Shown here: piece after piece, positions 1,159-41,544 of the stretch
Position numbering within the stretch: position 1 is the stretch's first letter
Layout of the letters: each line of letters begins with the position of its first letter
Source: Obrimoposthia wandeli
Taxonomy: Eukaryota
Length of the DNA stretch: 64,000 nucleotides
Direction: 5' to 3'
Assembly (NCBI GenBank): GCA_977020255.1
Contig: CDROCS010001000.1
Span: 496,001 to 560,000, forward strand
The notes under the pieces: generated by a model
Told to the model about the DNA's origin: nothing
Database searches by the model: none
What the model saw: the letters and a program-made list of their open reading frames with translations, nothing else
Made by a program: the position numbers and the translations under genes

Positions 1159-1184
1159 ATAAACCCGTTTAAAGTTGTTGTTTC

Positions 1185-14900: not shown

Positions 14901-17900
14901 AAGTGACTAAATTAGGACAGGCTAAGGTTCAATTTTGCGCAACAGTGCAGTTTAAAAATGTCAATGAGGAGACTAAAACTTGGGTAATTTCACATAAATC
15001 AACTGTTTTCTATGATAATTTTGTAACTGAAATTGGAAGAAACCTAGATGAAAAAATTGCTAATTATAGTGAGTTAAGTAGTGGATGGACTCTAGTTAGA
15101 ATTAACAATGTTAGCTTTGTTCTAACAAAGTTCACTGACATGATATATCTTTCGGGGAGTTCATACATTCCTTTACCTAGATCTCTTCAACTTTCACGTT
15201 CCATTGTTAACATACAAAACAGTGATAACCTTTGCTTTCTGTATAGCGTGTTGTTCCCAAATTAACATCAGGAAATCGCGTGAATCGCCAATACCAGCAT
15301 ACAACCGCTCAACCTTGTGCTCGTCTACTACAGCTGTGATAGACATTTAATATAAATAGTAGTATAGTTAAGGTGCAGTTCCGCCATTGATTAGCGAGTT
15401 CCATTGGTGATAACATAATCCTTAATTACTGAGCATAGAGAGCGTGTCAGTAAATATACCCCTTTTTTAAATGAATTGCAGTATCATGGAATAGATTTTC
15501 CTGTTAAATTAACTGCGATATCAAGATTTGAACATCTTAATAACTTGAGTAATAACTTCAAGTGTTGTTTGCGCGGATACTATTAAATCGGTGATGAGAT
15601 TACGGAGGCAAAGTTGCTAGTTTGTAGAGTAAAAGTTGAATAATCTGCACGTATTGGACATCGAATGGGTCTAGAGAAGCAAAATGAATGTTATCCTATT
15701 AGAAAAACTAATCTTGTTTCTCATGCTATACCTACAGGAGCACTATTTTATTACAAGCATCATATTTTTGGTGATATGGAACTCCCAAACGTTGTTCCTA
15801 ATGATATTTCTAATGATATACATGATCTATTGAAAGTACACACCTAAGCCTCGTTTAAATCACTGGGCAAAAATACACTATGATGTGCATTCTTGCCTGC
15901 TTCAAATGTATCTTAGACTTAGTGCTAACATACAAACTGTTCGCCGAGCAATCAAGTTTGCTCAAACTCATGTCTTTGAGCAGTATATTAAGTCAAATTC
16001 TGAGAAGAGGGCTATTGCTACTACTGATTTTGAATAAAACTATTATAAGTTGAAGATTATTTTTGGAAAATTCATAGAAAATTTGAAAAAGAGAATTAAC
16101 CTAAGAATCTGTAATACAGTGCAGAAACTAGTTATTTATTGTAAAGCTCAATTCCAGAAGTCAATATAAATATATGACAATCTTGTAGCGGTTTTATATT
16201 TGTCTTTATTTTTCATTTGTTTCTATTTTATTTTTTGATTCTATTTTAGATTTTTTATTTATTATTTTATCAAATTGTTACATAAATTAATACACATATA
16301 GCTGTTCTTATCACATTATGTAAATATTTCACTTCACATGCAAACACGCTCACATACACTAGTGATGTAATCGCGCTCTGTCAGGTTGTGATTTCATAAT
16401 CTTGTTACTTAGAGTAATCAACACATGCATACACTATTGATGTAATCATACTGTAATATTATGAATACATAATATTGTTACTAACCTAATCTACACATGC
16501 ACTAGTGATGTAATAAAATACATAATTACACAAATGGTAATTACATAACTTTTAACATATATTTATTTATTAAACTACTTAGAAAAGATAGTAATATGAA
16601 ATTTACTAATTAAATAAACCACTTAAAAATTATTCAATTTTGAAATATAGTTTACAGACAAAAGATAATAATTTAAAAACATCAATATTTATTGTTTAGC
16701 AGAAGGCCTTTTTTCATTTTGAAGATGTAGTATCCTTTTTTGCGCCTCTTGATGAATACCTTGTTTTGCATATTCCATCCTTTTAGCTCTGCGTATTTCT
16801 TTCATCTTCACTTTCCTTCTTTCTACCAATTCCTTATTCTCTAATTCTTTTTTCTTGGTCCATTCCAGGATCCTCCTTGTTTCAGCTAGACATTTATTTT
16901 GTACCGCTTCCAGCTTCTCATTCCACTCCGTTCTGGCTGCAGCATATAAATTGAGATTTACAATATGCTTGTGCAGGTCTCCTTTCTTCGAATTCTTCTT
17001 ATAATTTTTATGAAAATGGGAATTCCCATTATGAAATGAAACTAAAATTTTTCTCTTGTATACTCTTCTTGATTTTATTCATGCGTTAAAACAAATTCAC
17101 TTTAAAGAAAAAGGATAATAAAAAAAAATTCCAATTTAAATAAAATGCACATGGTATATAATAACCTAGATACATTGAACTGATTAAAATTATATTATAC
17201 ATTATGCATTTAGTTAAATGACTTTTGTTTAAATAATATATTATGAAATTTATGTATTTAAACAAAATGTCTTTGTGATGAAAGGATCCTCTGTTTCCTT
17301 TAGATAATATAATAAAAATAATATTTAAATTTACATGGTATATAATAACCGTTATAAAAATTATCTACTTTGAAATTAGAAGTAGAATATAAAACACTAA
17401 GTTTAAATTTTTGTTAAAATCTATTTTTGTAAATATTAGTAATTGTGATTCAAAGAAATTAAAAAGTAATTCTTTAAAGTTTTTAAATTTTTTTTTGGTT
17501 TTTAAAATTTTTGAATTTGGCACTATTTATTTTGAAAATTAAAACAAAAAGTAATATTTCAGTAAACGATTGTCAGGGCGAAAATAGTTTGAAAATTTAA
17601 ACAAAATTGTTTTGAATTTATTTGTCATTTAGGAAAAAATAAAATAAATGAAAATTTTGAAGGTTTTGAACCGAGTTCTGCCGAAGCCTATTATATATAA
17701 CTTTGAAAAGTAGAAAAAATAATAAAAACCTTCGAAGAACCGTCTTTAAAGAACTAGCTTTAAATAACCATCTCTTTGTTCTCAAATATTTTTTATATTA
17801 AACTTTTTTTAAATAAGGTAGTTTAATTAAATTTGCTTCAATGAACCAGGATAGATAACTCAGTAGGCTTGGATTGGAAATCTGGCCCATATTTGTTTAT

Positions 17901-23559: not shown

Positions 23560-26085
23560 CAATCATATTACCAATTTATAATCAAACAAACAACATAGTT
23601 CTTGTTTCTTCCTACGTCCTTGGATTTTGACTGAGGATATTATGTGATAATTCGGTTATTGAGCATATCATTCATTCATTCAATTACACTTGCAAACATG
23701 CTAGAATCATATTCAATAGGTAGATTGTATAAAAAGTCATGAGGGTTTACAGGTATTACCAAGTCTTCCTCCATAACATAACCATATTCAATATGTTCCA
23801 TGTTCACATTTTTCATTTCATGCACTATTTCGTTTAGCTTTATATCATAAAGAATCCATTCAAAATCTCCTTTTGGTAAAGGTTGATCAAGAGCCCATCC
23901 ATATAAATTATTAACATCTATATATAAAAGACTAGTTTCTTCATCAGCAACTACATGATGCTTATTGACAAATATCATTCCTCCACGTATACCCGAATAA
24001 ATCATTTTGTACATTCCAGGATTCTACATCAGTTCAACCTTATGTTTTAACATTTTTAGAGCACTTGTCCAACTCGACTAAGAATGCAAAATAAACAAAG
24101 TGGTTCTAAACCAGCTTCGCTGAGAGCTTTTCTTCTGAATGTTTAAAACCCGTCAGCTAATAAATATACGTCAGTCTTTAAGTAAACTAACATAAAGTCC
24201 ATCATATTTCTACAATTTGTTATTTTCCAAACATCTTGTGCTTTTTGATATTCAGTGTCTGTGATTTTATCATTTTCTTTTACTGGAAAACCTAACTTAT
24301 TCTGGAGAACATTAAATGAAGTAGCAAGATCACATGGGAATATTCCTTTGTCATCAATGAGTTTAGATGGAAAATCTGATCTTGTTAATGGAATGCTTGG
24401 TAATTTACTGGCTAAATTCTCCAAAGATGATTGTAAAAATTGCAAAGAATCTATAAATCTCAGAGTTATTTGACCTAATCTTACAATCATTACCTAAAAT
24501 TTTTCTGTCGATTGAGGTATAATATTTATATCACAGTCAGTAAATTTATTCAATGCATGTTTTAAAATATGATGTAAATCATAACCTCTGAGATTATGAA
24601 ATACAATAGGTAAAGTTGGACGAAGTTTTCTTGATAAATTACATTCATTTCATGCAGGACCTAGATACTTGCCAGTAAAGTGATAATGATCTTAAACATA
24701 TTTTAAGGTTGGTTCGTGACCTAAATAACATTCATTGGCATTGCTAATTGCACGAATCTATGTATTTGTTCTGGGAATCATTACGTTTTCAAGCGCATTT
24801 AAATACCATGGCAATACCTTTTCTTTAACCAAGTTCTCCATTGACTGAAAATATTCAACTATACAGTCATCACTAACATTATGTTGATACTGGGTTTCAA
24901 TTTCATCTGTGATCATAAATAACATAATAGATGCGACATGCATATGCTTTTGATGATAAATCTTATCTGGTATTCATACAGATTCAAAATCAGCGAAAAC
25001 GACATATTTCGGCGATAGAGTCTTTGACCAATCGATCAATTTAACGTACTTATTCTTAGGCATAGTATACATTGTAGTGCTTTCTTGATTATAGTCACAT
25101 AAAACTTTGTGCTTTTCTAATGACCAATCGGTTTTGAATCCATGTAAACAATCTTCACACCATTTTCGGCTAACTCTAGTCGTTTCCGTTCGAATATTTA
25201 ATAGCCGGTTAAGACATCTTATTCCTATATAATGAAACCGTTCCTTGGATTCTAGTAACAATAAATTAACTATAGTTCATCTCTTTATTTTTGATTTGTA
25301 TGCGACATCGATATACGGATTCTTGATAACATCAGTTTTTGATTCTTTTTTCACTTACCTCATTGAATATGAATACATATATTATTATACCAGGATTTTG
25401 CCGTTCAAATTTTGATATATTTGATATTTTCATAGGCATGTTTTCGGTATTATATACAAAGTCATTTAAAAATCTTTTATAGTTGCTTGGTCTACTTCTA
25501 TTTATTTCTATTTAATTATATTTAAGTATTGATAAAATTGCATAAATAAAGCAAATATAATTAGATTTTTGAATATTTATGACTGCTTTAGATTTTGTAA
25601 GATAATTTGGTTATTTAATATATGAATGACCTGACAATGCACAAATTTGGCTATATTTAATAGCAATAAATGTGTGTTCAAGTATTTTCCTCAAATTCCA
25701 ACCACTACCTTTTTCTGAATATTCTTCAACTTTATTTTCTATTGTATCTTTCATCTTCAAAATTATAGCATGTAAATAAATCATTGCTCGATGCGAAGCA
25801 TACCATTCATTAGTTTCTCCATCATTCTTTTCAAACCTCATCCTGATGATGTATTGAATATTTGCATTTCTCATTAACTGTACTATTCTTTCTAGTTCGT
25901 TTAATAATGCACCTGGAACCTTATGACTTACAAGATTGAGGTGATCTAATTTTATGGATATAGTTGAATAAATATTTTCTAACGATGATTTAGTCTGTAT
26001 ATTGTCATTTATTTTACGTTTTCGTGATGGAGTAGGAGCTGGAACTACTACACGTGATGGTTCATTAACTATATCAGTTCTTTTG
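23560..26085 (-). pseudogene. Protein-primed DNA polymerase B (family B), frameshifted and 3'-truncated
   Basis: TP region EEYSEKGSGW; CEDCLHGF; VVFADFES (Exo I); endonuclease VII remnant; FIDSLQFLQSSL; YLKTDVYLLAD; GIRGGM...YIDVNNLYGWAL (Pol A). Motifs B and C are absent. Confidence 0.92.
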
Positions 26086-26423: not shown

Positions 26424-26886
26424 ATGTTAACAAATATTAATTATAAAGGAATTTACCTAGATGATGTAACCAAATTAAATTTTCGAACACGATCAGAACA
26501 ATACGTTTATAAAACCAAAGATTATACAATACTTATTTTAGAAATAAAAAATGTAGGATCATGGGATGTAAGGTTCCTATTAAAAATATTTTTTATCCTT
26601 TAATATATATAATAGGTATATATTTAGTATTCAATCAATTACTGTATGTGAAAATTTAGGTCAAAGTATAAATCTATTCAGTTTATGGAATGTGTTACGT
26701 AATAAATGTGCATTTGAAGTTTTCCCAGGCTTAAAATTAAATATTTTCAATCCATTGTGTGGGAATATTTTCACTTATGGAAAGGTTATAATCTTAGGTC
26801 TTAGGAATATAAATGTTAACAATCAAATTAATGATATCATTACATACATTAAAAAATTATATAAATATGAATCAATTTCTAATTAA
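26424..26886 (+). pseudogene. TBP-like gene (family B), two frameshifts, no intron
   Basis: MLTNINYKG...TILI(F)RNKKCRIMGCK...IQSITVCENLGQSINLF...FEVFPGLKL..NPLCGNIFTYGKVIILGLR: two TBP-type repeats. Confidence 0.8.
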
Positions 26887-26901: not shown

Positions 26902-27285
26902 ATGTCTTATAAAGCACTTCAAAAGTATTACGAGTACGATATGTTCTTCCTGACATCTGCATGGATTCATCCAATGACTATGCCAGTGACATTATCGAAA
27001 ACTTCGTACAATTACCGAGTCTCTGATTTTGACAACAAATACATCCAACAACTCAATGATGTCATCAAATATTTGAAGATTGACGTACAACTTGATAAAG
27101 TGGTATATAGTGTCGGTACTAAACCAAAGGAACAAGCCCCCAGTTAAATTTCTTAATACAACACCAAGTCAGGTCTGAGAGGGGGTACCTTTTACTGCAA
27201 AACCATTTTGGCGTTGTATGTGTGATTTCAAGAACAATTTTAAGTATGGCACTATATATCTTACCGTTTAAAACCAAAGTAGATT
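26902..27285 (+). pseudogene. SSB/OB-fold-like accessory gene (family B homolog of 28105-28569)
   Basis: FFLTSAWIHPMTMPVTLSKTSYNYRVSDFDNKYIQQLNDVIK aligns by eye with RFLKKAQLIALVNPVTIERRKFSYYLSNIQKPDFQYLKQKVE. After a shift it continues to FWRCMCDFKNNFKYGTIYLTV. Confidence 0.55.
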
Positions 27286-27494
27286 AAGTAGATTTTAAGT
27301 GACCAAAGTCTCCCTTGCGGAGCCCCCTAAGAGTGGAGCCCTTCATTTGAAGACCGGACAGCACCTTTGGAAAAGATTATATTTATATTACTTTTGTTTA
27401 AAGTTAACCTTGAAATAATAATAAAATCAATTAATTATTTATTCATATGATAAATAACACTAAAATAAAATCAATTAATTATTTATTCATATGA

Positions 27495-27969
27495 TTACAA
27501 TTCAGCGTCAGTAGGTGGTTGTGTCCGGTCTAATCCACCCCCCTCACGGGGAGAGCTACCACTGTCCTTTAAAACCGTGCATGTGTGTGGAGTGACATTT
27601 CGTGCATGTGTGTCTCCATTCCACCCAGCAAAATATCCATTGAGACGTATTGAGATATTCCATAGTTCTTCATCTAGAATTGGAGCAATCAAATATCCTA
27701 GATCATCTTTAAAATCCAGACTGGGATCAGTTTCAAGCTGGAAACAATTTCCTTCATATACATAATCAAGAATGTAAAATCCCAAAATATTTTTCAATTG
27801 ATCATTTATCAGATGTTGTTAAAATTTCGATGAGATATTTATTCTCCACTTTTGATATTTTCACAGGATTAATAACTCGTATAATTTGATGCCTCTTTAA
27901 TATATTACATAGTTTTCCTTTTGAAATTCTTTCTGGATAATAAAAATTTGCTACACATCTCTTACCCAT
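27495..27969 (-). pseudogene. SSB/OB-fold-like paralog B (tandem paralog of 28105-28569)
   Basis: Reconstructed ILKRHQIIRVINPVKISK...LKNILGFYILDYVYEGNCFQL...DFKDDLGYL...NISIRLNGY aligns with FLKKAQLIALVNPVTIER...LKQKVEKAVPNFTFNKNEFYI...AFLDDYGRY...TVTIRLYGY. Confidence 0.65.
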
Positions 27970-28104
27970 TCTAAAATAAGGAAACTGATTAAAAAAACAA
28001 TGTTTATAAAAAAACTACACATAAGATACATATAAGATACAAATATTTAAAAAATAAAACTGATTATTAAATGAAAGAAACATAGTAAAATCGATTACAA
28101 TTTA

Positions 28105-28569
28105 TTACACGTAAAAGTTAAACATAGAAATATGAGCACGTTCAATTTTCCACATAGGCAACTTTGTCCCCATTTCATCTTTCTTGTAACCATAAAGTCG
28201 AATTGTTACAGTCAGTTGCTTCTTTTTCGGAAATGCATCAATATCAACATATCTTCCATAGTCATCTAGAAATGCTTCATCGGGTCCTCGGATATAAAAT
28301 TCGTTCTTATTGAAAGTAAAATTCGGAACTGCCTTTTCAACTTTCTGTTTAAGATATTGAAAATCTGGTTTTTGAATATTTGATAGATAGTAGCTGAACT
28401 TTCTTCTTTCAATTGTCACAGGATTTACTAAAGCAATCAGTTGAGCCTTCTTCAAGAATCTGACTTTGTATTTGAAATATTGTTTCACTTCTTCATACAT
28501 ATCCTTATCCGATTCTTCAAACATTTCTATATCTTCCTCATCGTTTAACACCTGTTGGCTATCATCCAT
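28105..28569 (-). CDS. 154-aa Maverick accessory protein, putative ssDNA-binding OB-fold (paralog A)
   Basis: Intact ORF with an acidic N-terminus and a beta-rich C-terminus (LTVTIRLYGY...GTKLPMWKI) reminiscent of viral SSBs. Three copies in the window. Function is inferred. Confidence 0.55.
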   Translation of the reverse strand: MDDSQQVLNDEEDIEMFEESDKDMYEEVKQYFKYKVRFLKKAQLIALVNPVTIERRKFSYYLSNIQKPDFQYLKQKVEKAVPNFTFNKNEFYIRGPDEAFLDDYGRYVDIDAFPKKKQLTVTIRLYGYKKDEMGTKLPMWKIERAHISMFNFYV

Positions 28570-28782
28570 CGTTGATAATTGTCTTTGATATGAATGTATT
28601 TACTATGATTTGTCCTCCAATGACGCATTCTTTTATACTAATTTCAAACAAAGACATGAATATCATTGGTTAATATAACTAAAGCATTGAATTTGATTGG
28701 ACCAAATCCATATTAAAAATCAAATTTTATTGGAAGATATATATCATCCAATTACATTGGGTTTGCAATATAATTACAAGAA
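28570..28782. promoter_or_regulatory. Divergent promoter with six CCAAT/ATTGG boxes between the SSB-like and TBP-like genes
   Basis: CCAAT at 28617 and 28748; ATTGG at 28665, 28696, 28729 and 28756; TA-rich GATATATATC at about 28736. Confidence 0.55.
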
Positions 28783-29349
28783 ACGTGCAATAAAAAAGCA
28801 GGTTCAGACATATATAAAGAAGATTTTACAGAATACAATTTTAGTCTATTGAAACTCGTAAATATAAATTATAAAGGTAGAACAGAAGATGATGTTTCGT
28901 ACTTACCATTCTATGAATGGAAACCGAGACAATATGTGAAAAAGTTTGGCAATTTCACAGTTGTTATTTTTCCTACAGGTTAGTTTTTTATTTTATTTTC
29001 ATATTGAATTCTTTTAGGAAATTGTCGTGTTATGGGATGCAAAATACCAATACTTGGGTTCAATTTACCATTTGGAATTCGAATCACTGCAATACAATCA
29101 ATCACGATTTCGGCAAATCTTGGGAAACAGATAAATCTTTTTAAAATTGCAGAGAAAATGAAAGAAGAATGCATGTTTGAACCAGAAATTTTTCCTGCTC
29201 TCAGTTATTTGAAGTTTAAACCGCTATGTGTAAATATATTTTCCAGTGGTAAAGTTATGATATTGGGATTGAAAATTTTTGATTTTCTAGACATTGTTGA
29301 TTTGATTTTAAAAAATATATCTTATTACATCTTGTTATCTTTTCTATAA
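28783..29349 (+). CDS. TATA-binding-protein (TBP)-like protein, about 175 aa, exons 28783-28978 and 29018-29349 (start codon ACG here, ATG in the 601 copy)
   Basis: Spliced product: ...LKLVNINYKG...VVIFPTGNCRVMGCK...IQSITISANLGKQINLFKIAEKMKEECMFEPEIFPALSYLKFKPLCVNIFSSGKVMILGLK. This matches both TBP repeats (cf. ALIFSSGKMVCTGAK; YEPELFPGLIY; LLIFVSGKVVLTGAK). A 39-nt GT-AG intron removes an in-frame TAG. Confidence 0.85.
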
Positions 29350-29366
29350 ACAAACCTGTTTAAACA

Positions 29367-29648
29367 TTGTTTCAAATGAATAATACTATAAATAGAGACA
29401 ATGAAGTGGATCGGCTTGCCGACGAAATATTTTCTGGAAAAATTAGGGGTAAAGAAATTTTATCAGAATTAAAAAATAATGATATAACAAGAGATAACAT
29501 TGAAATATTGGTTAGATCACACGTTATTCGAGAATTTAGAAATCGTACACAAATAAATAAAATTATAGTCAAATATTCATTAATTAATTTTTGTATTTCA
29601 TCTACAATAGCTCTAACATTGTACATTTCAATAAGGAAACTTCTATGA
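29367..29648 (+). CDS. 93-aa hypothetical Maverick protein with a C-terminal hydrophobic segment
   Basis: Intact ORF ending IIVKYSLINFCISSTIALTLYISIRKLL; homolog at 1185-1358. Confidence 0.65.
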   Translation: MFQMNNTINRDNEVDRLADEIFSGKIRGKEILSELKNNDITRDNIEILVRSHVIREFRNRTQINKIIVKYSLINFCISSTIALTLYISIRKLL

Positions 29649-29685
29649 TAATATAAACAATATTAAAAATAAAAGAGTATATGCA

Positions 29686-30333
29686 ATGGAGCTAAATAAT
29701 AATGCAGTATTTCAAATAGTTGGTCCCAGTGGAAGTGGAAAGACACATTTCGTATGTAAATTGTTGCAAAATGAATCTCTTTTCAAATCTAGTTTCAAAA
29801 ATATTTATTGGCATCATGGTGGAGGAGGGGAAAGCGGATTAACCAAAACAGAAGTTTGCAAGTTGAAGAGAATACAATTTATTGAAGGATTTGATGCAAA
29901 TTGGTGTGAAAGATTGAAATAAGAAGATGTAATAATAATTGATGATTTGTATCAGGAAGCTAACAAGGAATCAGACTTTAATAATTTATTTACGAAGATT
30001 GCAAGACATCGTGAAGTAACAATTATATTTATCACTCAAAATCCTTTTCACCAAGGAGGTCACCATAGAACTAGAAATCTTAATGTGCATTACTTAGTTT
30101 TATTTAAAAATCCTAGAGATCAAACAGTTGTTGATTTCGTGGCCAGACAGGGATTTCCCCAAAATAAAAACGTTTTAGTTGATTCATTCCACGATGCTGC
30201 TAAACAAGCACATGGGTATATATTTATTGACTTTACACAAGCTTGCCCAGATGATTTACGTGTTTTAACAGACATATTTAATTCTAAGGGAGTAACTGTT
30301 TATAAACAAATAGAGAACAATCATAAAAGATAA
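29686..30333 (+). pseudogene. A32/FtsK-HerA-like DNA packaging ATPase with one premature stop (TAA 29920-29922)
   Basis: Walker A GPSGSGKT; Walker B IIIDDL; RHREVTIIFITQN; RTRNLNVHYLVLFKNPRD. The two ORF-track halves are in the same frame. Confidence 0.95.
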
Positions 30334-30340
30334 ATGTACA

Positions 30341-30481
30341 ATGCCTTTTACGAAGTTGATAGTAAAACGTAAAGCAAAGCCTAAGAAATCAAAAAAATGA
30401 ATCATTAAGAAAAAAGAAGTGAAAAAATTAATCAAATCTGTAGTTAGAAATATAAAAAAACTTAAATGGCTTCGAATATAA
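30341..30481 (+). pseudogene. Small lysine-rich basic protein (putative core/DNA-condensing), one internal stop
   Basis: MPFTKLIVKRKAKPKKSKK*IIKKKEVKKLIKSVVRNIKKLKWLRI. Confidence 0.5.
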
Positions 30482-30512
30482 ACAATATTTAAATTGAACC
30501 TTTTTTATTAAA

Positions 30513-30842
30513 ATGAAGAAAATACAAAGAAGCATACCCTATTTTAAAGCTTTAGTCAAAGCCTCTTCTCATAAGAGTATGATTATTCTTAAAGCATTTC
30601 CATCTTTTGTTGTAGATGATTTATTGGAAGTTTTGTATAATATAGTTTTGGGTCGAGTAAAAGTTGGAAATCGGAAAAATATATTAAAGAAATATAGAAA
30701 AACTCTTCTAGATATTGCTAATGTAAAAAGTAAAAAAAGGAAACGAAATATTATTCTTAAACATAATGGTGGTTTCATAGGGGCTGTTATTCCAGTTGTT
30801 GCTTCAATTATCAGTAGTATTATGGCTGCGACACGTTCATAA
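30513..30842 (+). CDS. 109-aa Maverick conserved basic protein with a C-terminal GG|F amphipathic peptide (putative virion core/membrane-active protein)
   Basis: Basic body followed by KHNGGFIGAVIPVVASIISSIM, a pattern typical of Polinton small structural proteins. Confidence 0.7.
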   Translation: MKKIQRSIPYFKALVKASSHKSMIILKAFPSFVVDDLLEVLYNIVLGRVKVGNRKNILKKYRKTLLDIANVKSKKRKRNIILKHNGGFIGAVIPVVASIISSIMAATRS

Positions 30843-30925
30843 ACAATTATTTATAAAATCAGTTAAAGATATGGGTGCTAACCCTTCTTTACCTAAATTT
30901 AAATTTTCTTTCAATTCAAATTGTT

Positions 30926-31945
30926 GTAATGGAGAAGAAATGGTTCAATACAAAAGATCCAATTGGCTACACAATAGTTTCAAAATTAGCAAAAAGAACA
31001 AAACAAAATTACAAGAAAACGCAGAAATGGTTGAGCAACCAGTTAGCCTACAGTCTGAACAAGCGGATGAGAAGAAGGTTTCCAACTAGAGCTTACAAAA
31101 CCAGCGGTCCTAATAATTTATGGCAAATGGATTTGATGGAGATGATCCCATATAATAAGGGATATCGATATATTTTAACATGTATTGATGTATTTAGCAG
31201 GTTTGCTCGTGCAATTCCAGTTAAAGCAAAGTCTTCAATAGCTATGCTTGAAGCCATTAAAGAAATATTAAAAGAGGACATTCCACAAAATTTGCAAACT
31301 GATTTAGGAAAAGAATTTTATAATAAGCAAGTTCAATCTTTATTTAAACAAAATAATATAAATCACTACTCTGTTTTCACAGTATAAAGCAGCAGTAGTA
31401 TAAAGATTTAATCGTACTTTAAGAGATCGAATAAAAATGTATTTCACAAAAGAAGGAAATAAAAAATGAATCCAAGTTTTATCTAAAATAATACATGCAT
31501 ATAATCACTCGGAACATAGAGGTCTCAAGGGAATGAGACCGGTTGATGTTACTAATAAAAATTCTATGGATATTTGGATGGACAGGATTTAAAAAGAAAA
31601 TATTAAAAAAGCTAAATATAAAAAAAACGAATATGTCCGAATTTCGAAAATTAGCTCTACTCCATTTATTAAATACTTTGGTCAGAATTGGAGCGATGAA
31701 ATATTTTGTATAGGTAAAATTGATCAAAAGAGTAATCCAATTATGTATACTATTAAAGATGCTGACAATACTATCGTTCACGGTAAATTTTACGAGCAAG
31801 AACTACAAGTAATATCAAATAAACCTAGCGTTTTCCGTATTCAAAAAATATTAAAATCTAAGGGTGCCGGTAAACATAAACAATACTATGTTAAATGGCA
31901 TGGTTATTCAGATCCAACTTGAATATCAGCATATAATATAATATG
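30926..31945 (+). pseudogene. Retroviral-like (rve) integrase with C-terminal chromodomain
   Basis: WQMDL, CIDVFSRFA and LQTDLGKEF (two catalytic D). KAAVV*RFNRTL has the catalytic E mutated to a stop. Also YNHSEHRGLKGMRP, WSDEIF, GKFYEQEL and chromodomain QYYVKWHGY. Confidence 0.95.
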
Positions 31946-32993
31946 AAGTCTATGTATATGGTTTTACTTAGTAACGGATGTCCGAAGACTCAACCAGATA
32001 ATTACGCTAGTAGCTTTATTATCGATTGGGAAAATCCTATAAATCTCCAAGGAGAATGGGAAGCGGCTTTAACAGAATTTTCCTTTTATTATTCTCCAAT
32101 TACTATCAGAAAAAACTCACATATTTCGTTTACAAAAGAAGTTGATCATGAAAAATCAATTGAAGTTCTGATTAGGTTTGATAGTAAAGGAAAATTCTAT
32201 TACAATTGTATAGATAAAGAAGTCAAAGTAATATATGAAAAAAACAAAGTCAGATTTAAAAATCGACTAAAACATTTTTTAAAACCTATTCAAATTATAT
32301 TTGGATCTGATAGAGAAGCTCTTCAATTCGGTTTTGACAGTGGACATGTAGTAGATATGAAGAGATCTGATATAGCCTCATCTAAATCGTTTAAAATGTA
32401 ACAAAAGTGTTTTTAGTTGAAACGAGACCAAAGTATGTAGTGGAACTGAAAATGTTTTCAAAAGATTATAAATTAGATAGCGAAGTGAATTTCTGTAAAT
32501 TAATACAGAAGGAATGTAGTGAATATTTCGATACATGTGTAACATTAAAAAATGGTAAAATAACGTTTACAGTAAAGAGCAATATAATACGAGTTTTATT
32601 TGATGATAAACTCGCTAAAACCTTGGTTTAAACAGAAATACCTTTGAAACCCATACAATAAAAACCATAAAAGCTAAAAATAAGGCAAAACTTTTAAATG
32701 CTGTTAATCATTTATATATTTATACTAATTTAATAGAACTAACGCTTGTAGGATGACAGCGAGTTCCACTTTTGAGAACAATATGGATATCTAAAAATGA
32801 AACTAGAGATGGGGACGCTGTCGGTATGTGTATAGATCAACCAATGCATCTTCCAGTTTCTCTCTTTTCTATAAACAATATTGAAGTAAATATTAGAGAT
32901 GATTCCGGACAACTAATAGATTTCACGTACGAGGCCAAGACAAGTTTAACAATACATTTAAGAAAACAAAATGGCGAATCCAGCAATAATTGA
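31943..32993 (+). pseudogene. Minor capsid protein (penton, PX), disrupted
   Basis: N-terminal YMVLLSNGCPKTQPDNYASSFIIDWENPINLQGEWEAALTEF and C-terminal IEVNIRDDSGQLIDF...LTIHLRK are typical Polinton penton motifs; it lies upstream of PZ and MCP. Confidence 0.85.
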
Positions 32994-33348
32994 AGCTTAT
33001 AGTTAAAGCCAACAAGGTGGAGAATTACCATATTTTGTTGGTAAACAATATGGATCTGGCTAGCTTAGAACATTAGGTAGATTAGCCTTTTATCTTTTAA
33101 AGAGACTCGGGCGATTTATATCAAAATTAGGAAAGGAATACCTTTCATCTAAGGACAATAAACTAATACCAACTTTTAAGAAGCATGCGCTTGAGGAACT
33201 TGATAATGTTTTACCTTAAGTTGCTAATTTGATTAGAAAACGTAAATCAAATAAAAGCCAAGGAGGTAGTGGATTTAAAAGTAAAAAGAAGCAAAAAATC
33301 AATATAAACAAACGTAAGAAAGTTGAAGGAACAATATTTGCAAAATGA
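32971..33348 (+). pseudogene. PZ-like conserved Maverick structural protein
   Basis: MANPAIIEAYS*SQQGGELPYFVGKQYGSG*LRTLGRLAFYLLKRLGRFISKLGKEYL (cf. Q.GGGLP.F.G...Q.G.G.G..L..LFR). The stop overlaps the MCP ATG. Confidence 0.8.
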
Positions 33349-34573
33349 GTTGCGCCAAAACTGAATTGTGTATTTTTGATAAACCGCTTCCACAAGTAGT
33401 TGTAGATAATGCTTCCTTTGAAGAAATATTTCTAGTTAACTCAGTTTCAGGAACCACTTTAACCGATTTAGAATTTAATATTAATGGTTCCAATAGCGAG
33501 TATTTAGATTTGAATGATACTTTGCTTTATGTTCAAATAAAAGTATTAAATCGGGATGGTACTAATTTAGATGAAAATGCAGATGTAACACCTGTACATT
33601 ATCTCTTTAATTCTTTATTTAGTGATGCCATTGTTACTCTTAATAATGTCAAAATTGAAGGTGGAAATTCTTCCTATGCTCATAAAGCGTTGATTGAAAG
33701 TCTTTTGAATTATAGTACTGATACTCAAAATACTAATTTGGCAACCATTGGTTATGATAAAACGGTCGCAACTCGCAAAGAATGGATTGCAGGTTCTAAA
33801 GCTTACGAAATGTGTGGGTCTTTGAAATTGAATTTCTTTGAACAACCGAAATATTTAATTCCCGGTGTTAATGTACATCTTCGTTTGAAACGTAATAAAT
33901 GGAATTTTTCTTTGATAAGCACAGACGTTCTAAAACCTAGACTTGATATTTTGAATGCAAAATTATATGTCCGAAGAAGTAAAACGGAGCAATCAGTTTT
34001 AATGGCACATAATATAGGAATGGAAAAAAACAATGCTTGTTATCCTATTAGAGAAACTAAACTTATATCCTATTCTTTAGGTACGGCTACACAAGCTTTT
34101 AATAAGGATCAAATTTTTGGTGATGTAAGATTACCGAAATTCATTTTAATTTCTTTTCAAAAAACTGCAAAGTATCTAGGAAATTATACGACAGATGCAA
34201 CTCAATTTGACAATCTTAATGTAGGTTCAGTGACACTTTCAAGAAATACGATTATCGTGAAACAAATAAAACAGATTTCGAAGGTACCGCTTATGCTTTG
34301 GCTTATACACAATCTATTATTCGGAATTTGGGCCAACTAGATAAAAATATAAACAATGGTATTTCTTTCACTGAGTTTAAAAGCAGCTGCCCCTTCTTCA
34401 AATTAGTTTTGGCACCAGACTTTGATATAAACCAATGCCAACTACCAAAGGATGGAAATTTACGACTAGAAATTAAGTTCAATGTAGCTTTAACACATCC
34501 TACTACGGTGCTTATTTACGGAGTGTTTGATTCCGAAATACAAATCAATAAAAACAGAACTGTCATATTATAG
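33345..34573 (+). pseudogene. Major capsid protein (double jelly-roll, PY), one frameshift near 34250-34300
   Basis: CAKTELCIFDKPLPQ, LEFNINGSNSEYLDLNDTLLYVQIKV, YAHKALIESLLNY, KYLIPGVNVHLRLKRN; C-terminal DGNLRLEIKFNVAL...VLIYGVFDSEIQINKNR. Confidence 0.93.
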
Positions 34574-34574
34574 A

Positions 34575-34955
34575 ATGAAGTAAGACATTTTTTAAATTTA
34601 TATTTATTAATTTTTATTTAGTTCAGTACAAGTACAAGTATGAGCAGAGAAGGTCTTGGGTGATAAATTCAATGGAGTTTATCCTATTGATATGATTCCA
34701 TTTTTTCAATCTGGAGGATACATTATCAATACTCATACTTCGAATTTACCAGGAGAACATTGGATAGCTATTTATGTTAGAGAGTGGACAATACATGTAT
34801 TTGATCCACTTGCAATGTATTATCCACACAAACGTGTTTCAACTATTCAAAAAGGACGAAGAAGAGTATTTTACAACAAGATACAATATCAGGATCCTGC
34901 GACGAGAATCTGTGGACATTTATGTATTTTATGGTTATCGTTGCAAAACGATTAG
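34575..34955 (+). pseudogene. Adenain-like cysteine protease, exons 34575-34579 and 34622-34955 (42-nt intron), one early TGA
   Basis: Spliced MNSVQVQV*AEKVLGDKFNGVYPIDM...GEHWIAI...VFDPL...QYQDPATRICGHLC contains the His-Asp-Gln-Cys catalytic set. Confidence 0.9.
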
Positions 34956-35220
34956 TGTGTTATAAAAATAGAAATTTTAAATGTTTTATTTTGAATTATT
35001 TTTTTTAAATCCCTAAAGATATAAGGGTAAAATAATAAAAGACATAAGACGAATTTTTTTTTAATACATTTATTAAAAACAACATCACAATGAGATCTGT
35101 CAGCAAAGATATGGTCCATCCTAAAAAATGTTTTGAAATAACAAAATGTTAGAGTCAAGGTGCCATAGGGATCTAAAATTTTAAAGGACTAATCTAAAAA
35201 AATAAAAAAATGAAAACCGT

Positions 35221-38200
35221 TTAAATTCGGAAGTGTCCATAAGCCAGGCTAGCGATTTTTGTTGATTTATGGGAATACATTTGATGGGCTCTTGAAATAA
35301 ATCTAGTTTGCTCAACGCTTTCAATACACCCAGTATCATAAACTTTCCGGTAGGCCTCATTTGTAAGATTGTTTCTTCCCACACCCTTTGCTCTCATTGA
35401 ACATGTATTATTAGATGCATGTAAACTGTAGCATTTAGGGCGTAGGAAAATACAATCATCATACGAAACCTGTCCCTCGCTTTCATCCTTAAATTTCCCG
35501 ATAATATCCTTTAAACCCATAGAGTGTAGAGGATGGTAGCGGGATATTTATGGGTATCTAGTAAGTTGTCCCTAAACATTGCCGGTAATAATTGACTATT
35601 TAAATTAACATTCCTACATTCTAAAAAGAAATAGTCAGTGTTCTCGGCTGCAATTTTGATCTCACAATTAAATTCATGTCGATATTTCTCTAATTCTATG
35701 TATTGAAGCTCGTACATTCTATTTTAGAAATGTCTAAAACCGTTTGACCTATGTAACTTGGTCTATTGAGACAAATTCTCTGTTTTCTTAATAATACTGC
35801 TACCAAGTCATCTGCAATTGTAAAACTACGCTTGAAGTTGTACTTGCTAGTATATGTTATTAGTTTACGCTCATCATTGCAAAACCGTAGACAAATACGT
35901 TTCCGCAAGTCCTCTACAGTTTTTCGAAATAAGCTATTACTTTTTAACTTGTAAAAATCCCGATCGAATTTGCTAGTGGCCAAATTACGCTTTCTAGAAT
36001 TCTTCTCAATATAGTCTTTAAACACAAAGTTTTGACTTAAGCTTATAGCACGATGAATTCGAGTAACTTTCGCTCCCAACTTTAAGTAGAATTGAAGAAG
36101 CCGCCAATGCACAACATAATTCAACTTGTCTTCATGGGTAAACAATAATTTCTTAACCTTTGAATTAGGTGGGCATTGATGAACAGGTGCTACTGGAAGA
36201 TCATCTAATTTATCATGCACATTGGACGGGATTGTTAAGTCAACCTCAACCAAATAGCCGATGTCTGATGAAACTGTATCAACAGTAGCCAACTCTGTCA
36301 TCAACTTATTCAACTCTTCCTCATCATAAACCCACTTAAAGTTGGCATGAGGTAGAGGTTGAGTAAGTGCTCACCCATACAAATTATTAATGTCGATGTA
36401 CAGAATCTCCGTGGATTGATTTTTGACAACATGATGTTTGTTGACAAAAGTCATTCCACCACGTATACCATAATCATACATTTGATACATCGCGGGATCT
36501 TGCAGTAACTCGATATTAATTTTAAGAGTTTTTATTGCTGTTGCCCATGAAATACCAGGTAAACTAAAGAAATGCATGGGATCTAGCCCATCTTCTGCTC
36601 AAGACTTTACACGAAAGGACTCAAAAACATCAGCTAAAAGATAAATGTCTAATTTCATATAATAAAGCATATATTCTAAAAGATTTCGACAATTATTCGC
36701 CCAAAATGTACGGGCCTCATTATAGTCTTGAAGACTTACACTTTCAAATTCAGTTATGGGTGGGATTTCTGTGGGATTTTCTAAATCTGCAAAGGTTTTC
36801 GCAAATTTATACGGAAAAATCCCCTTATCATTAACCGAAGCTGGGAACACTGACTATGTGATTGGCCATGCATTTAAAGATGTCGTTAAATTTTTTAAAG
36901 ACCCGCTCAAAAACTGCAGAGAACCTATGAATCTTAAACTGCAGAATTCAGTATATGCAGTTAAAGATAAATATTTATCTGAAGTTTGAGGTATACATGG
37001 AATTTCCCAAGAGCTTAATGTACCCAACGCATATCCTTTGAGGTTATGAAACACGATGGGAATTCGTGGTTTTTTAGGGAGACGACGGCCAAGGTTACAG
37101 AGGTTGCACGCCGCTCCCAAGTATCGCCCCGTAACATGATCGTGATCTCTGACTATTTTAGACTGGGTTCCACACAAATAACATAATCTACAAGAATTAA
37201 AATTAACCCAGTATATGCCTGTCATGATCATTGCTTGATGAGCATTAAGATCATACCACGGTTTGACAATTGTTGTTCCTAATTCCTCTAATTTTAACAT
37301 AAAATCTAAAATACAATTTATGATACTGGGTAATATTGGGACCTAATAATAGTAGTCCTGCCGAAGCCAGTAGGTGAATACTCTCATACTGGTCGTGCAA
37401 TGCTAAAATTGACTCAAAATCTGCATACACCCTGAATTCTACGGGTATGCATTTTGCCCAATCCCTGAATTTTAAATCCTTATCCTTAGGCATGCTATAT
37501 AGCTTATTGTCATCAGGATTCAGTGAACATAATGTCAGATGTTTGCTGTAAGAGAGCTCGGATCGGAATCCATGCAAACATCTATGACACCACTTACACC
37601 TTATCCTAAACGGTAAGGCTCCATTATCTAAATTTAAAAGACGATCTAAACTGGGAATTGCAGCATAATGGAATTTATTATTCTGTTCGAGCAAAATTAA
37701 GTTGACCTGAGTCTCCTCATTTTTACTCCTATAAATTACATCTACCAAAGGATTTTTAAATATTTCTTCATCTGTTACATTAACTGAGATATCAGTATTA
37801 TATTTGAATACATTAATACTCAAGTTATTAAGATGTTCAAATCTTGATATCGCAGTTAATTTAACAGGAAAATCTATTCCATGATACTGCAATTCATTTA
37901 AAAAGGGGTATATTTAGTGACACGTTCTCTATGCTCAGTAATTACACCTTTTTCGAGGATGGCCAACACGCTATACAGAAAGCAAAGGTTATCACTGTTT
38001 TGTATGTTAACAATGGAACGTGAAAGTTGAAGAGATCTATATGAAGGAATGTATGAACTCCCCGAAAGATATATCATGTCAGTGAACTTTGTTAGAACAA
38101 AGCTAACATCGTGAATTCTAACTAGATTCCATCCACTACTTAACTCGCTATAATTAGCAATTTTTTCATCTAAGTTTCTTCCAATTTCAGTTACAAAATT

Positions 38201-39766
38201 ATCATAGAAAACAGTTGCTTTATGCAAAATTACCCAAGTTTTAGTCTCCTCATTGACATTTTTAAACAGCACTGTTGCACAAAATTGAACCTTAGCCTGT
38301 CCTAATTTAGTCACTTCTATTTTTAAAAGATTTTCAATATTTGAATCTACACCTACGTTTAATAAAATTTCATTTCCTAATGGCACCTTAATTATAACAT
38401 ATTTATTATTTAGGTGATACTCTATAGTAGCACCGTTTTCTCTACATGTGTTTGGTGGGACCTAATTAAGAAATTGGCCTCGCCTCTTTCTTCCTATAGT
38501 CGCTGACAAACCTCCCCCTAATTGAACGGGAAGACAACTATTTATATTAAATCTTGAAGTTGGTGCTGCTGATGTTGAGGCAATCGCAGCTGATGTGGAA
38601 GGTGCTGCTATTGGATATGCTGCTGTAGTAGATGCTGCTGTAGTAAGTGCTGCCGCAGTTGTAGATGCTACATTTGGAGTAGTAGCCGACGAAGAAGCGG
38701 CTGTTGTAGAGGATGATGCTGCTGAAATAAATATATTAAAAAATAAATATATTTCTAAAAATTATTACCTCTAAGGCATGCTAACATCGATGTATGCACT
38801 CGCGATGGTGGCGGCATAGCTGTTGTAGCGGAAGACGGTTGTATGACGGTAGTCGCTGGCATTGGCGATGAAGAAGCGACTGTTGTAGAGGTTGAAACTG
38901 CTGAAAAAATATATTAAAAAATAAATATATTTTTAAATATTATTACCTCTAAGACATCGATGTAGGAACTCGTGATGGGGGAGGCATAGCTGTCGTAGCG
39001 GATGACGGCTGTATCACGGTATTTCCTGAATAAAAATAAAAATAAAATATATATAATTACAATTTATAAAAAGAATCTGAAAAATAATAAAAAAAACCTA
39101 ATGAAAGCAATCCAACTGGAGCTGGAATGAAGTCCTCTTCATTTATGGAATCCATCCAGCTGTCGTCCGTTATCTCGACGAAATCGGATTCCTCGATGGT
39201 TTCCAACCATGAGTTATCGCTCCACTGAGGCTGCTCCATCTTGAAATCTGACTGGGTGATATTTTACATCCAGTCATTGTTTGAGAATTGGGTTGCTGGC
39301 TCCATCTCCTCAAAATCTTCTTCGGAGATGTCGTTCATCCACTCATTGTTAGACATTTGAGTAGATGGGGCAGCAGCAGAATCAGGAGCCGGGACAGAAG
39401 GACCAATGGCAGGACCGTAAAAGGGTTGATCGACTGCAACTGGAATTGGAGGTGGAGCGGCCTACGAATCGCGCAACAATTGGACGATATCCCTCTTCTT
39501 GTTGTTGGCCGTGAAACACGATAGATGAGCTCGATGTTCACCGAAGAATTCTCGAAACTCCTTCTCCTCCATTGTTCCGAAGAAGGGGCAGACGAAGAAG
39601 TGAAGCCCGCGAGACTTTTTCCGATAGTAGGCGGACATTATCTCCATGCAGGTCTCTTCTCCATGCGGAGCCGAAGCACCACAATATGCTGGAAACAGGA
39701 TACAAGTAATCTGAAATAAGAAATATTAATAAGGAAATAATAAAAATAAATTCTTACCATAGACAT
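35221..39766 (-). pseudogene. Protein-primed DNA polymerase B (family C) with a spliced N-terminal leader; multiple stops and frameshifts
   Basis: Leader exons lead into TP (SSGW), vOTU-like (NIQNSDNLCFLYSVLA), CHRCLHGF and VYADFES. Then endonuclease VII (CYLC..RDHDHVTGRYLGAACNLCN), FHNLKGY, YMKLDIYLLAD, YIDINNLYG, KLKSNSLF.K, ENTDY (degenerate DTDS), LRPKCYS and the terminal AYGHFRI. Confidence 0.93.
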
Positions 39767-39805
39767 TATTTCAAATTGTCGGGGATTTAAATGAAGAAGA
39801 ATTGT

Positions 39806-40278
39806 TTATCTACATGTCAAGTAATAATAAGAAAGACTTAAACATTTTTTATATGCACAATGGTCACCATGATTACGATATGGACAGCAAATATTTCGTG
39901 GAATTTTTAATAGATGATCACGTGAAATATTTAAAGTATTCAACCTCAATTTGGGAAAATATTTATTTTGCCATCCATTTCATCTAAAACATAAAAAAAT
40001 CCATTTTCAATATCAAAATTAGATTTTATTGTATCGAAAATACATATTTCACAAATAGCCTTATGTCCTTCTTTCCATTTTAACAAATGAAAATAATTAG
40101 TTAGATATAAATTAGTAAATTTTTTCTTATAATCTAAACTTTTAAACGGGATATCTATTTGAAATATGAAATGCAAAGGATGAAAAACGTCGCATACATC
40201 CATAATACATAATTCTTTTATAATATAATCACCATTTTTGTTAATGAAAGCCTCAAAATCTATGATATATTCCTGCAT
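39806..40278 (-). pseudogene. DEDD-superfamily / Maelstrom-like nuclease-domain protein (one frameshift)
   Basis: N-terminal YIIDFEAF...IIKELCI (Exo I DxE). After the shift it reads NICCPYRNHGDHCAYKKC, a Cys/His cluster. Confidence 0.6.
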
Positions 40279-40377
40279 AATTATCTAAATTTGCAGCAAA
40301 TCCCGTTGTTTATAACGAAAAAAGAAAAAAGAAATTATTAAAATAACAAAGTATTCAGGATTCAATCCTTCATGTTT

Positions 40378-41523: not shown

Positions 41524-41544
41524 TTTTTAATTATGAAGATGTTA

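Follow-up and report, generated by a model that had tools for sequence, protein, structure and literature searches.

The region at 28849-29349 on the plus strand harbors the relic of a gene for a shortened TATA-binding protein (TBP) paralogue, split by a single GT-AG intron and located within a decayed virus-like transposon of the Maverick/Polinton type. The window referred to throughout is the whole stretch of 64,000 nucleotides that was analysed, from Obrimoposthia wandeli (assembly GCA_977020255.1, contig CDROCS010001000.1, positions 496,001 to 560,000 of the forward strand). The gene is a standard component of a whole clade of such elements. The relatives used for comparison are referred to by locus (L) or protein (P) number. 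The features of the TBP-like gene and of its other copies in the window are as follows.

28786-28800, plus strand: conserved upstream motif (TGCAATAAAAAAGCA) of the TBP-like gene
28811-28819, plus strand: canonical-type TATA box (TATATAAAG), 38 nt before the conserved N-terminus
28849-28978, plus strand: exon 1, a degenerate N-terminal half-repeat (family HMM positions 2-45, E 1e-9), with the start codon lost and no other break
28979-29017, plus strand: 39-nt GT-AG intron, phase 1, inside a Gly codon
29018-29349, plus strand: exon 2, the end of the N-half plus a complete TBP repeat (family HMM positions 45-150, E 2e-37), with the TAA stop at 29347-29349
29343-29356, plus strand: variant box (tctATAAACAaacc) overlapping the TBP stop codon, 30 nt before the ATG of the next ORF (29376)
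667-1168, plus strand: copy A, a pseudogene with 5 in-frame stops and 1 frameshifting deletion that keeps a 31-nt GT..AG intron
26424-26886, plus strand: copy B, of a more distant subfamily (about 48% aa identity to copy C, the copy at 28849-29349), with no intron at the shared site and at least 2 frame changes; family HMM hits in three frames cover positions 2-152
48151-48258, plus strand: fragment D, about 36 codons of the C-terminal repeat (family HMM positions 99-134, E 5.5e-11)

The surrounding element, referred to as element C, contains the following genes, nearly every large one of which is broken.

27509-41762: tentative extent of element C, bounded by a 29-nt inverted repeat (27509-27537 / 41734-41762, 93% complementary)
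28105-28569, minus strand: 154-aa gene divergent from the TBP-like gene, a conserved neighbor in relatives (tblastn to L006, L011 and L012; same layout in L044)
29376-29648, plus strand: small ORF (90 aa) preceded by the variant box
29686-30333, plus strand: A32-type packaging ATPase with 1 in-frame stop and a P-loop hit, 75-81% identical in aa to relatives annotated PF04665 Pox_A32
30513-30842, plus strand: 109-aa conserved small gene preceded by the variant box
30871-31943, plus strand: rve-type integrase (Pfam rve E 2.4e-14) with at least 1 frame change and up to 4 in-frame stops
31949-32975, plus strand: homologue of a 353-442-aa protein of relatives, without an assigned function, with 1 frame change and 1 stop
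33345-34570, plus strand: double-jelly-roll major capsid protein, 55-58% identical to 407-410-aa relatives, with 1 frame change
34656-34952, plus strand: protease-like gene
35230-37775, minus strand: protein-primed family B DNA polymerase with an Endonuclease VII domain (Pfam DNA_pol_B_2 and Endonuclease_7), with at least 2 frame changes and 3 stops
39821-40278, minus strand: homologue of the roughly 160-aa gene that lies next to the TBP gene in the second layout of relatives, with 1 frame change, partly duplicated in tandem up to 40866
41765-42163, plus strand: C-terminal fragment of an older ATPase gene (73.6% nt identity to 29938-30338), directly outside the candidate right end of element C

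Gene structure and state of the window's copies

The frame from 28774 is open to 28980, and a second piece runs from 29020 to 29346 and ends at a TAA stop. The segment at 28979-29017 starts with GT and ends with AG, and is the only GT..AG segment of 25-70 nt whose removal leaves 28849-29346 open. The sequence-only reading, which had proposed an intron-containing TBP-like gene at 28783-29349 within a Maverick/Polinton, is confirmed in its observation. Its spliced model of 176 codons including the stop aligns as one HSP to intronless relatives of about 150 aa (56% over 147 aa, E 8e-54, to P0002, the closest full-length relative), and scores 174 bits in one domain against the family HMM, as opposed to 126 + 35 bits for the two pieces apart. 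In an alignment with the family the two pieces abut exactly (..VVIFPTG | NCRVMGCK..). The reading's statement that ORF callers miss the N-terminal half also holds, since ORF calling gives only a 105-aa ORF from an internal Met.

A number of its details, however, require correction. The intron holds two in-frame stops, a TAG and a TGA, and not just the TAG that was described. The codon at the proposed start, 28783, is not a start codon, and the proposed 22-residue N-terminal extension is not supported: the first 66 nt, from 28783 to 28848, are promoter and not coding. They contain the canonical TATA-type box and the upstream motif, exact copies of which are found at 604-618 and 28786-28800 in the window and at 163-177 of L016, and nowhere else in 34 loci, which also led us to reject TGCAATAAAAAAGCA as a general promoter. 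Homology with relatives begins at 28849, and this copy has no in-frame ATG ahead of that point. The description of two TBP-type repeats is likewise weakened, as the first is a degenerate half that Pfam does not detect on its own. Finally, the second copy, placed by the reading at 601-1158, is real, with window positions 1-1308 matching 28146-29501 at 82.7% identity, but it is a pseudogene, and two further TBP-like relics (B and D) lie in the window.

The intron is shared at the same codon and phase by copy A, in which it is 31 nt, and by the metagenomic relative L016, in which it is 40 nt, and at these three lengths its removal restores the frame; all three share an internal TTCAT string. Intronless relatives are contiguous at this site. 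A further 40-nt GT..AG intron is found at another site in the same gene of L035. Database proteins of about 103 aa that start at the internal Met could be taken as signs of the same intron, but L005, L006 and L007 are contiguous there, and these are start miscalls. A ciliate-type genetic code, with TAA/TAG read as an amino acid, was considered because of the in-frame stops and low GC, and was rejected because genes end at TAA where their relatives end. No single intron was found that explains the stops in the 32986-33345 gene, and these are counted as breaks.

The copy at 28849-29349 is itself a relic. It has lost its start codon and sits in a decayed element, while the exons of copies A and C are 83% identical with a dN/dS of 0.84, so that nothing here is under selection. 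In contrast, dN/dS is 0.16-0.31 among the close relatives L012, L013 and L014, which indicates purifying selection.

Homology, predicted fold and distribution

Exon 2 alone matches Pfam PF00352 (TBP) at E 9.7e-13, with 48.2 bits against a cut-off of 22.9, and relatives score 50-74 bits (E 1e-13 to 1e-20) with two stretches. The family profile searched against PDB sequences returns only TBPs, down to E 1.4e-23, with the best scores to archaeal and microsporidian TBPs, which leaves the origin of the protein unresolved. An AlphaFold model of P0002, which is a relative and not the window's own protein, has a pLDDT of 96.8, and its top 44 Foldseek hits in the PDB are all TBPs, at TM 0.6-0.74 over the full length. 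Cellular TBPs and TBP-related factors have a core of roughly 180 aa built from two tandem repeats, each with the order strand-helix-four strands-helix, that form a ten-stranded saddle. In the model of P0002 the C-repeat is complete, whereas the N-half has four strands and no helix; hhalign of the N-half against the C-half of the family nevertheless gives 91% probability, E 1e-6.

Among 65 family members the nearly invariant columns include E100, E102, F104, F120, G123 and G129 of the C-repeat and F41 of the N-half. In tool alignments these match the YEPE.FPGL and IF.SGK stretches of cellular TBPs, which comprise the acidic stirrup that contacts TFIIB and the phenylalanines that kink the DNA. 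E100 and E102 align with the YEPE stretch of solved TBPs, so that contact with TFIIB is inferred from conservation alone. F104, F120 and F41 are at least 90% conserved, but the partner position in the N-half is not, so that DNA bending like that of TBP is not assured.

The gene is not a one-off capture, which was one of the outcomes named beforehand as refuting the reading. At least 52 protein clusters exist at E<=1e-30, and the window alone has four copies, each next to element genes. Synteny with L006 and L016 extends over 28108-34952. All six long contigs recruited through the capsid protein, down to 39% capsid identity, carry PF00352 beside a packaging ATPase, rve integrase, double-jelly-roll capsid, protease and protein-primed polymerase, and position is conserved in more than 10 independent contigs. 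TBP is not among the classical Maverick/Polinton core genes, but here it is present in every sufficiently long relative examined. A scan of IMG/VR with the family alignment gave 33 pattern matches, none of which was confirmed.

The remaining genes place the element among the Mavericks/Polintons and polinton-like viruses. DNA_pol_B_2 is detected at 35699-36313 and 24146-24490, and the polymerase shows about 50% identity to an 802-aa PolB of L039. The rve integrase is accompanied by a Chromo domain in L040 and L042, and the ATPase is 75-82% identical to proteins with PF04665. An AlphaFold model of the capsid relative P0160, which is 58% identical to the window gene, has a pLDDT of 88.6, and its top Foldseek hits are the capsid proteins of PBCV-1, SGIV, Sputnik and mavirus (E 7.5e-17). 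The protease-like ORF has no direct Pfam hit but is homologous to genes with faint, weak or full Peptidase_C5 hits in L002, L040 and L042. The 29-nt inverted repeat gives only tentative element boundaries, drawn without reference to a target-site duplication, and no terminal repeats were found in L040 or L042. Rfam and tRNA searches gave no hits, and Pfam gave none on about 30 ORFs outside the elements; the only taxon names among capsid or ATPase homologues belonged to distant (29%) Littorina saxatilis proteins.

In some respects the protein resembles the TBP-like proteins of giant viruses (Nucleocytoviricota), which are its best matches in the viral structure library, for example Heterosigma akashiwo virus at E 1.4e-8. 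Those proteins are longer (190-500 aa), share only 11-20% identity in the structural alignments, and serve viruses that carry their own RNA polymerase, whereas we could discern no polymerase subunit in this element, and its gene has a spliceosomal-type intron, which implies nuclear host transcription. A second, working analogy is with the herpesviral late-gene TBP mimics (the KSHV ORF24 / EBV BcRF1 / HCMV UL87 family), in which a virus-encoded TBP-fold protein reads a non-canonical TATA variant in the virus's own late promoters and recruits host Pol II. A BcRF1 protein and a U58 protein appear as weak structural hits (E 2e-3 to 4e-3), but there is no detectable sequence relationship and the herpesviral proteins are much larger. 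The presence of such a gene is not wholly new, since literature searches found that a "TBP" gene, possibly of the same family, has been labelled, without description of the fold, intron, distribution or promoters, in maps of midsize eukaryotic linear dsDNA (MELD) viruses with adintovirus-like PolB from non-animal datasets (Starrett et al. 2021, Virus Evol, PMC8502044, Fig. 5 legend). The same legend lists a TRAF-like gene, and L035 has a MATH/TRAF-type gene beside its TBP gene. No other description was found, and a literature search for the box sequence described below was uninformative.

Two classes of promoter

A box ATAAACA, scored as AT[AG]AACA at -60 to -15 from the ATG, is found in 46 of 119 element genes, with a median position of -35 and an sd of 7 nt. 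For four loci, 28/72 genes carry it against a 2.6% background (P 1.5e-25), and the same boxes precede the window's own genes. None of 29 TBP genes has it (Fisher p 1.4e-5), and these carry canonical-type TATA boxes instead, at about -36 to -47. The box is conserved across elements whose capsids are only 39-58% identical. The signal lies in position and strand relative to gene starts, since there is no window-wide enrichment of ATAAACA (38 found, 35 expected). It should be borne in mind that only about 39% of called genes show the box, that gene starts come from a prokaryote-style caller, and that no box-bearing elements lacking the gene were among those examined.

Interpretation

The interpretation offered by the sequence-only reading, a virus-like transposon lineage with its own basal transcription factor or a TBP mimic or antagonist, is partly supported: the protein is a genuine TBP homologue that belongs to the element and not to the host, and its gene is split by a real-looking intron, but its function remains an inference. 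The explanation we favor, with moderate confidence, is that in intact relatives the gene would be transcribed by host RNA polymerase II from its ordinary TATA box about 36-47 nt before its ATG and, in this sub-lineage, spliced of a roughly 40-nt intron. The protein of about 150 aa would then bind the variant box (C/T)ATAAACA(A) that sits about 35 nt before the start codon of many other element genes (ATPase, capsid, small ORFs) and, through its conserved C-terminal stirrup, bring in host TFIIB and Pol II, thereby switching on the rest of the element in a two-tier, self-encoded promoter-recognition system. Our analysis establishes the homology and predicted fold, the intron by comparison with relatives, membership of the element's gene set across a clade, purifying selection among close relatives, and the two promoter classes, whereas expression, splicing, DNA binding (to TATA boxes in general and to the variant box specifically), TFIIB recruitment and temporal order are inferred. 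The window's own copies are non-functional remains, and host TBP might read TATAAACA perfectly well by itself.

Among the alternatives, it is possible but unlikely that the protein is a general extra TBP that substitutes for or supplements host TBP on all element promoters without sequence discrimination. The box would then be read by host factors, either host TBP or a forkhead-type protein, or would serve mainly as a combined stop and 3'-end signal. ATAAACA does fit both a TATA-like core and a forkhead-type consensus, and in 10 of 42 cases the box contains the upstream gene's TAA stop, so it could partly act in 3'-end formation. However, the distance to the downstream ATG is tight (sd 7 nt) while that to the upstream gene end is dispersed (sd 218 nt), three boxes lie in divergent intergenic regions where no gene ends, and the box is conserved across divergent elements.

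Similarly unlikely is a TBP decoy or antagonist that keeps the DNA-binding and/or TFIIB-binding face and competes with host TBP, either to damp host transcription or to protect the element from host repressors that act on TBP, without reading a special promoter. The model lacks H1 and H2 of the first repeat, which in TBP carry binding surfaces for TFIIA, NC2, Mot1 and TAF1, and the stirrup motif is conserved. This reading does not explain the sharp promoter dichotomy between TBP genes and the other element genes, nor why an integrated, mostly silent element would keep a general antagonist as a core gene.

A non-transcriptional role, such as recognition of genome ends or of a packaging signal together with the neighboring ATPase, is suggested by the layout in which the gene lies just upstream of the packaging ATPase, but appears very unlikely. 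In the second layout the gene lies after the protease and a roughly 160-aa gene, far from the ATPase, and the sequence similarity is specifically to TBP, including the TFIIB-stirrup motif. It is more doubtful still that the 39-nt segment is an insertion that broke the gene and that the spliced frame is an artefact. The element is otherwise decayed, and the splicing is inferred from sequence alone, yet the segment has GT..AG ends and a T-rich 3' part, three diverged copies restore the frame at the same codon and phase, the copy in L016 sits in an otherwise intact gene with an ATG and in a contig whose capsid gene is in one frame, and L035 has its own intron. A host TBP/TRF gene or pseudogene that merely lies among transposons has nothing to commend it beyond the TBP homology and is effectively refuted by the synteny; also against it are the four copies in 64 kb and a protein of about 150 aa with a predicted helix-less first half, unlike the cellular TBPs retrieved.

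Taken furthest, and only tentatively, the evidence would allow that a widespread, mostly metagenomic clade of Polinton/Maverick-like viruses runs its own two-tier transcription programme in the host nucleus, in which an early gene with an ordinary TATA box makes a minimal "one-and-a-half-repeat" TBP that specifically reads the variant box (TATAAACA) about 35 nt before most other element genes and hands them to host Pol II. This would be a small-virus counterpart of the herpesvirus late-gene TBP mimic, and in some lineages the system would have become so nuclear that the gene has acquired spliceosomal introns.

A conserved, self-encoded TBP paralogue together with a clade-wide promoter box makes directly testable the essentially unknown matter of how Polintons/Mavericks and polinton-like viruses, which have no RNA polymerase of their own, get their genes expressed and timed. 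Gene and box together would give a simple sequence signature for recognising this clade and its regulated genes in genomes and metagenomes. The protein would be the smallest natural TBP-type saddle known to us, which is of interest for how much of TBP is needed to nucleate a pre-initiation complex. Finally, the shared and independently placed introns of about 40 nt, as identified by sequence comparison, show that these virus-like genes live long enough in nuclei to acquire host gene structure.

Structure of the intron-split gene and its copies

In the sequenced interval, the frame that enters at 28774 stays open to 28980, and a second piece runs from 29020 to 29346 and ends in TAA. The segment between them, 28979-29017, begins with GT and ends with AG, holds two stops when read in frame, and is the only GT..AG segment of 25-70 nt whose removal leaves 28849-29346 open. 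When the two exons are joined as they stand, the product, which amounts to 176 codons including the stop if counted from the start proposed in the sequence-only reading, aligns as a single HSP to intronless metagenomic proteins, such as the relative P0002 (56% over 147 aa, E 8e-54). The joined product scores 174 bits in one domain against a family HMM, whereas the separate pieces score 126 and 35 bits, and in the alignment the pieces abut without gap or overlap (..VVIFPTG | NCRVMGCK..). Exon 2 alone passes the Pfam TBP profile (PF00352) at E 9.7e-13. The observation of an intron-containing TBP-like gene is thus real and far beyond chance.

Some details of the sequence-only reading nevertheless require correction. 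Homology with every relative begins at 28849, and the 66 nt that had been included upstream as coding sequence hold a canonical-type TATA box together with a 15-nt motif that is also found, non-coding, about 70 nt upstream of the ATG in the metagenome locus L016. These 66 nt are promoter or leader rather than coding sequence. As it stands, this copy has no in-frame ATG ahead of the conserved N-terminus, and its start codon is lost. The second copy, at the start of the window, lies within a block (1-1308) that matches 28146-29501 at 82.7% identity; it keeps a 31-nt GT..AG intron but is interrupted by stops and a deletion, and the dN/dS of 0.84 between the two copies indicates neutral decay. Two further TBP-like relics, which had not been listed, are also present. 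The features concerned are as follows.

28786-28800, 15-nt upstream motif shared with L016
28811-28819, canonical-type TATA box
28849, start of homology with relatives
28979-29017, GT..AG intron of 39 nt
667-1168, second copy, with 5 in-frame stops and one frameshifting deletion
26424-26886, TBP-like relic of another subfamily, with no intron at the shared site and at least two frame changes
48151-48258, TBP-like fragment of 36 codons

The intron finds support in comparison with relatives, although the inference rests on sequence alone. Locus L016, which has an ATG and an otherwise intact gene, harbors a 40-nt GT..AG intron in the same Gly codon and phase, while most relatives are contiguous at this point. 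Three lengths (39, 31, and 40 nt) all restore the frame, so an intron is much more likely than an insertion. In L035, another related locus, the TBP gene has a 40-nt GT..AG intron (L035:5230-5270) at a different, phase-0 position, and introns have therefore entered this gene at least twice. The host of the window is AT-rich (about 28% GC), uses the standard code, and has introns of about 30-40 nt.

The predicted protein

A profile of the family finds only TBPs among PDB sequences, down to E 1.4e-23. The C-terminal repeat aligns best with the second repeat of cellular TBPs, including the YEPE.FPGL and IF.SGK..TGAK stretches. The structure was predicted with AlphaFold2 for P0002, the closest full-length relative, which at 56% identity stands in for the window's own spliced protein; with a 65-sequence alignment, the model has a pLDDT of 96.8 and a pTM of 0.87. 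In this model the C-half is a complete TBP repeat, whereas the N-half has four strands and no helix. In a Foldseek search against the PDB, the 44 significant hits are all TBPs, aligned over the full length at TM 0.6-0.74 and 20-25% identity. Against viral models the best hits are giant-virus TBPs, with weak hits to herpesviral BcRF1/U58-type proteins, and no polinton or virophage protein appears.

An hhalign comparison of the N-half with the C-half gives a probability of 91% and E 1e-6 over 28 columns. The N-half is therefore a degenerate repeat and not an unrelated domain. Columns conserved in at least 90% of 65 sequences include F41, R47, and G50 in the N-half and E100, E102, F104, P114, V117, G123, and G129 in the C-repeat, and M49, N118, and F120 are invariant.

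The element and its relatives

The gene is surrounded by a P-loop ATPase that is 75-82% identical to PF04665 proteins, an rve integrase, a 407-aa-type protein, a protease-like gene, and, on the other strand, a DNA_pol_B_2 polymerase with an Endonuclease VII domain. The 407-aa-type protein is a double-jelly-roll capsid protein, as judged from the predicted structure of its relative P0160 (pLDDT 88.6), whose best PDB matches are PBCV-1 Vp54, SGIV, Sputnik, and mavirus capsids (E 7.5e-17). This is a Maverick/Polinton-type element. The Endonuclease VII domain lies within the polymerase region (36854-37300, minus strand) and is also seen in the 1158-aa polymerase of the related locus L037 (L037:1-2421), which appears to represent a nuclease-polymerase fusion in this clade. 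The copy is decayed, with the following breaks.

ATPase, 1 stop
Integrase, at least 1 frame change and up to 4 stops
Homologue of a 353-442-aa protein, 1 frame change and 1 stop
Homologue of a 113-aa protein, 3 stops
Capsid protein, 1 frame change
Polymerase, at least 2 frame changes and 3 stops
Homologue of a ~160-aa protein, 1 frame change
TBP-like gene, start codon lost, otherwise intact

A 29-nt inverted repeat (27509-27537 / 41734-41762) may mark the ends of the element. A GC-richer stretch at 27150-27620, just left of and overlapping the candidate left terminal repeat, contains a short internal repeat of the 'gaccggaca' type and could be a terminal region or a small inserted repeat. Directly outside the candidate right repeat (window 41734-42163) lies the C-terminal half of an older ATPase gene, 73.6% identical to the element's own ATPase; the matching N-terminal half was not found on the left side. 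This suggests nested or adjacent insertions in a Maverick graveyard. Segments of the element's left-hand (minus-strand) genes are also repeated and tandemly duplicated at 84-91% identity (13503-15253 against 37849-39029; 39199-40866), including a 237-aa ORF at 14552-15265 with no Pfam hit. Islands of higher GC (about 39% against 28%) at 10001-12300 and 54000-56200 hold ORFs of 90-120 aa, one with an AT-hook-like basic tail; they gave no family match and are possibly other transposons.

The TBP-like gene is part of the lineage. A search of 1.84 billion representative proteins gives 52 clusters at E<=1e-30 with full-length, single-stretch matches of about 140-200 aa, and 27 metagenome loci were retrieved. 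L006 and L016 are syntenic with the window from the divergent 154-aa gene through TBP, ATPase, integrase, and capsid to the protease. As an independent test, we recruited long contigs through the capsid protein rather than through TBP, and all six (L035, L037, L039, L044, L040/L041, and L042) carry a PF00352 gene, with capsid identity down to 39%. Two layouts occur: in one the TBP gene lies just upstream of the ATPase, and in the other it lies after capsid, protease, and a ~160-aa gene. Among the close relatives L012, L013, and L014, dN/dS is 0.16-0.31 at dS 0.1-0.34. Accessory genes sit next to the TBP gene in relatives, namely a MATH/TRAF-type protein in L035 (L035:3952-4941) and a RING-finger protein in L006 (L006:1446-1868).

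Two promoter classes and a putative role for the protein

In seven related loci, 46 of 119 genes, with starts as placed by an automatic caller, have AT[AG]AACA, usually (C/T)ATAAACA(A), at 15-60 nt before the ATG, with a median distance of -35 and a standard deviation of 7. In four loci, 28 of 72 genes have the box, against a background of 2.6% per window (P 1.5e-25). The distance to the end of the preceding gene is, by contrast, dispersed (sd 218). In ten cases the preceding stop codon lies inside the box, as with the window's TBP gene, and three boxes lie in divergent intergenic regions. The box is seen in L006, L035, L037, L039, L040, L042, and L044, and in the window it occurs as follows.

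29343-29356 (plus strand), before the ORF at 29376
29650-29663 (plus strand), before the ORF at 29686 (ATPase)
30475-30488 (plus strand), before the ORF at 30513
30836-30849 (plus strand), before the ORF at 30871 (integrase)
33301-33314 (plus strand), before the ORF at 33345 (capsid)
40300-40316 (minus strand), before the ORF at 40278
40782-40798 (minus strand), before the ORF at 40760

None of 29 distinct TBP-gene upstream regions has this box (Fisher p 1.4e-5). They show ordinary TATA-type boxes at about -36 to -47 and a TCATAA-like string just before the ATG. This string, seen in L008, L010, L012, L015, L020-L026, L035, L039, and L044 about 30 nt after the TATA-type box, may be an initiator, which would imply near-leaderless mRNAs.

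Viral TBP homologues are established in giant viruses, and a 'TBP' gene is labeled in maps of midsize eukaryotic linear dsDNA (MELD) viruses with adintovirus-like PolB, in the Fig. 5 legend of Starrett et al. 2021 (PMC8502044). The same legend lists a TRAF-like gene, and L035 has a MATH/TRAF gene beside its TBP gene. The half-repeat architecture, the clade-wide presence, the introns, and the promoter dichotomy appear undescribed in the literature searched.

Other explanations cannot be excluded. The protein could be a non-specific extra TBP, with the box read by host factors, or a decoy or antagonist, or it could have a packaging or end-binding role. A host gene, or a mere insertion in place of an intron, is very unlikely.

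The interpretation in the sequence-only reading is partly supported, but its functional proposal, that this transposon lineage carries its own basal transcription factor or a TBP mimic or antagonist, remains an inference. The promoter dichotomy, the conserved stirrup and phenylalanines, and the core-gene status of the gene support the following reading, in which binding, specificity, and timing are inferred. Most likely, this is an element-encoded, minimal TBP, which would be expressed from a host-type promoter, read the variant box of the other element genes, and recruit host TFIIB and Pol II through the conserved stirrup, with the herpesviral late-gene TBP mimic as the closest working analogy.
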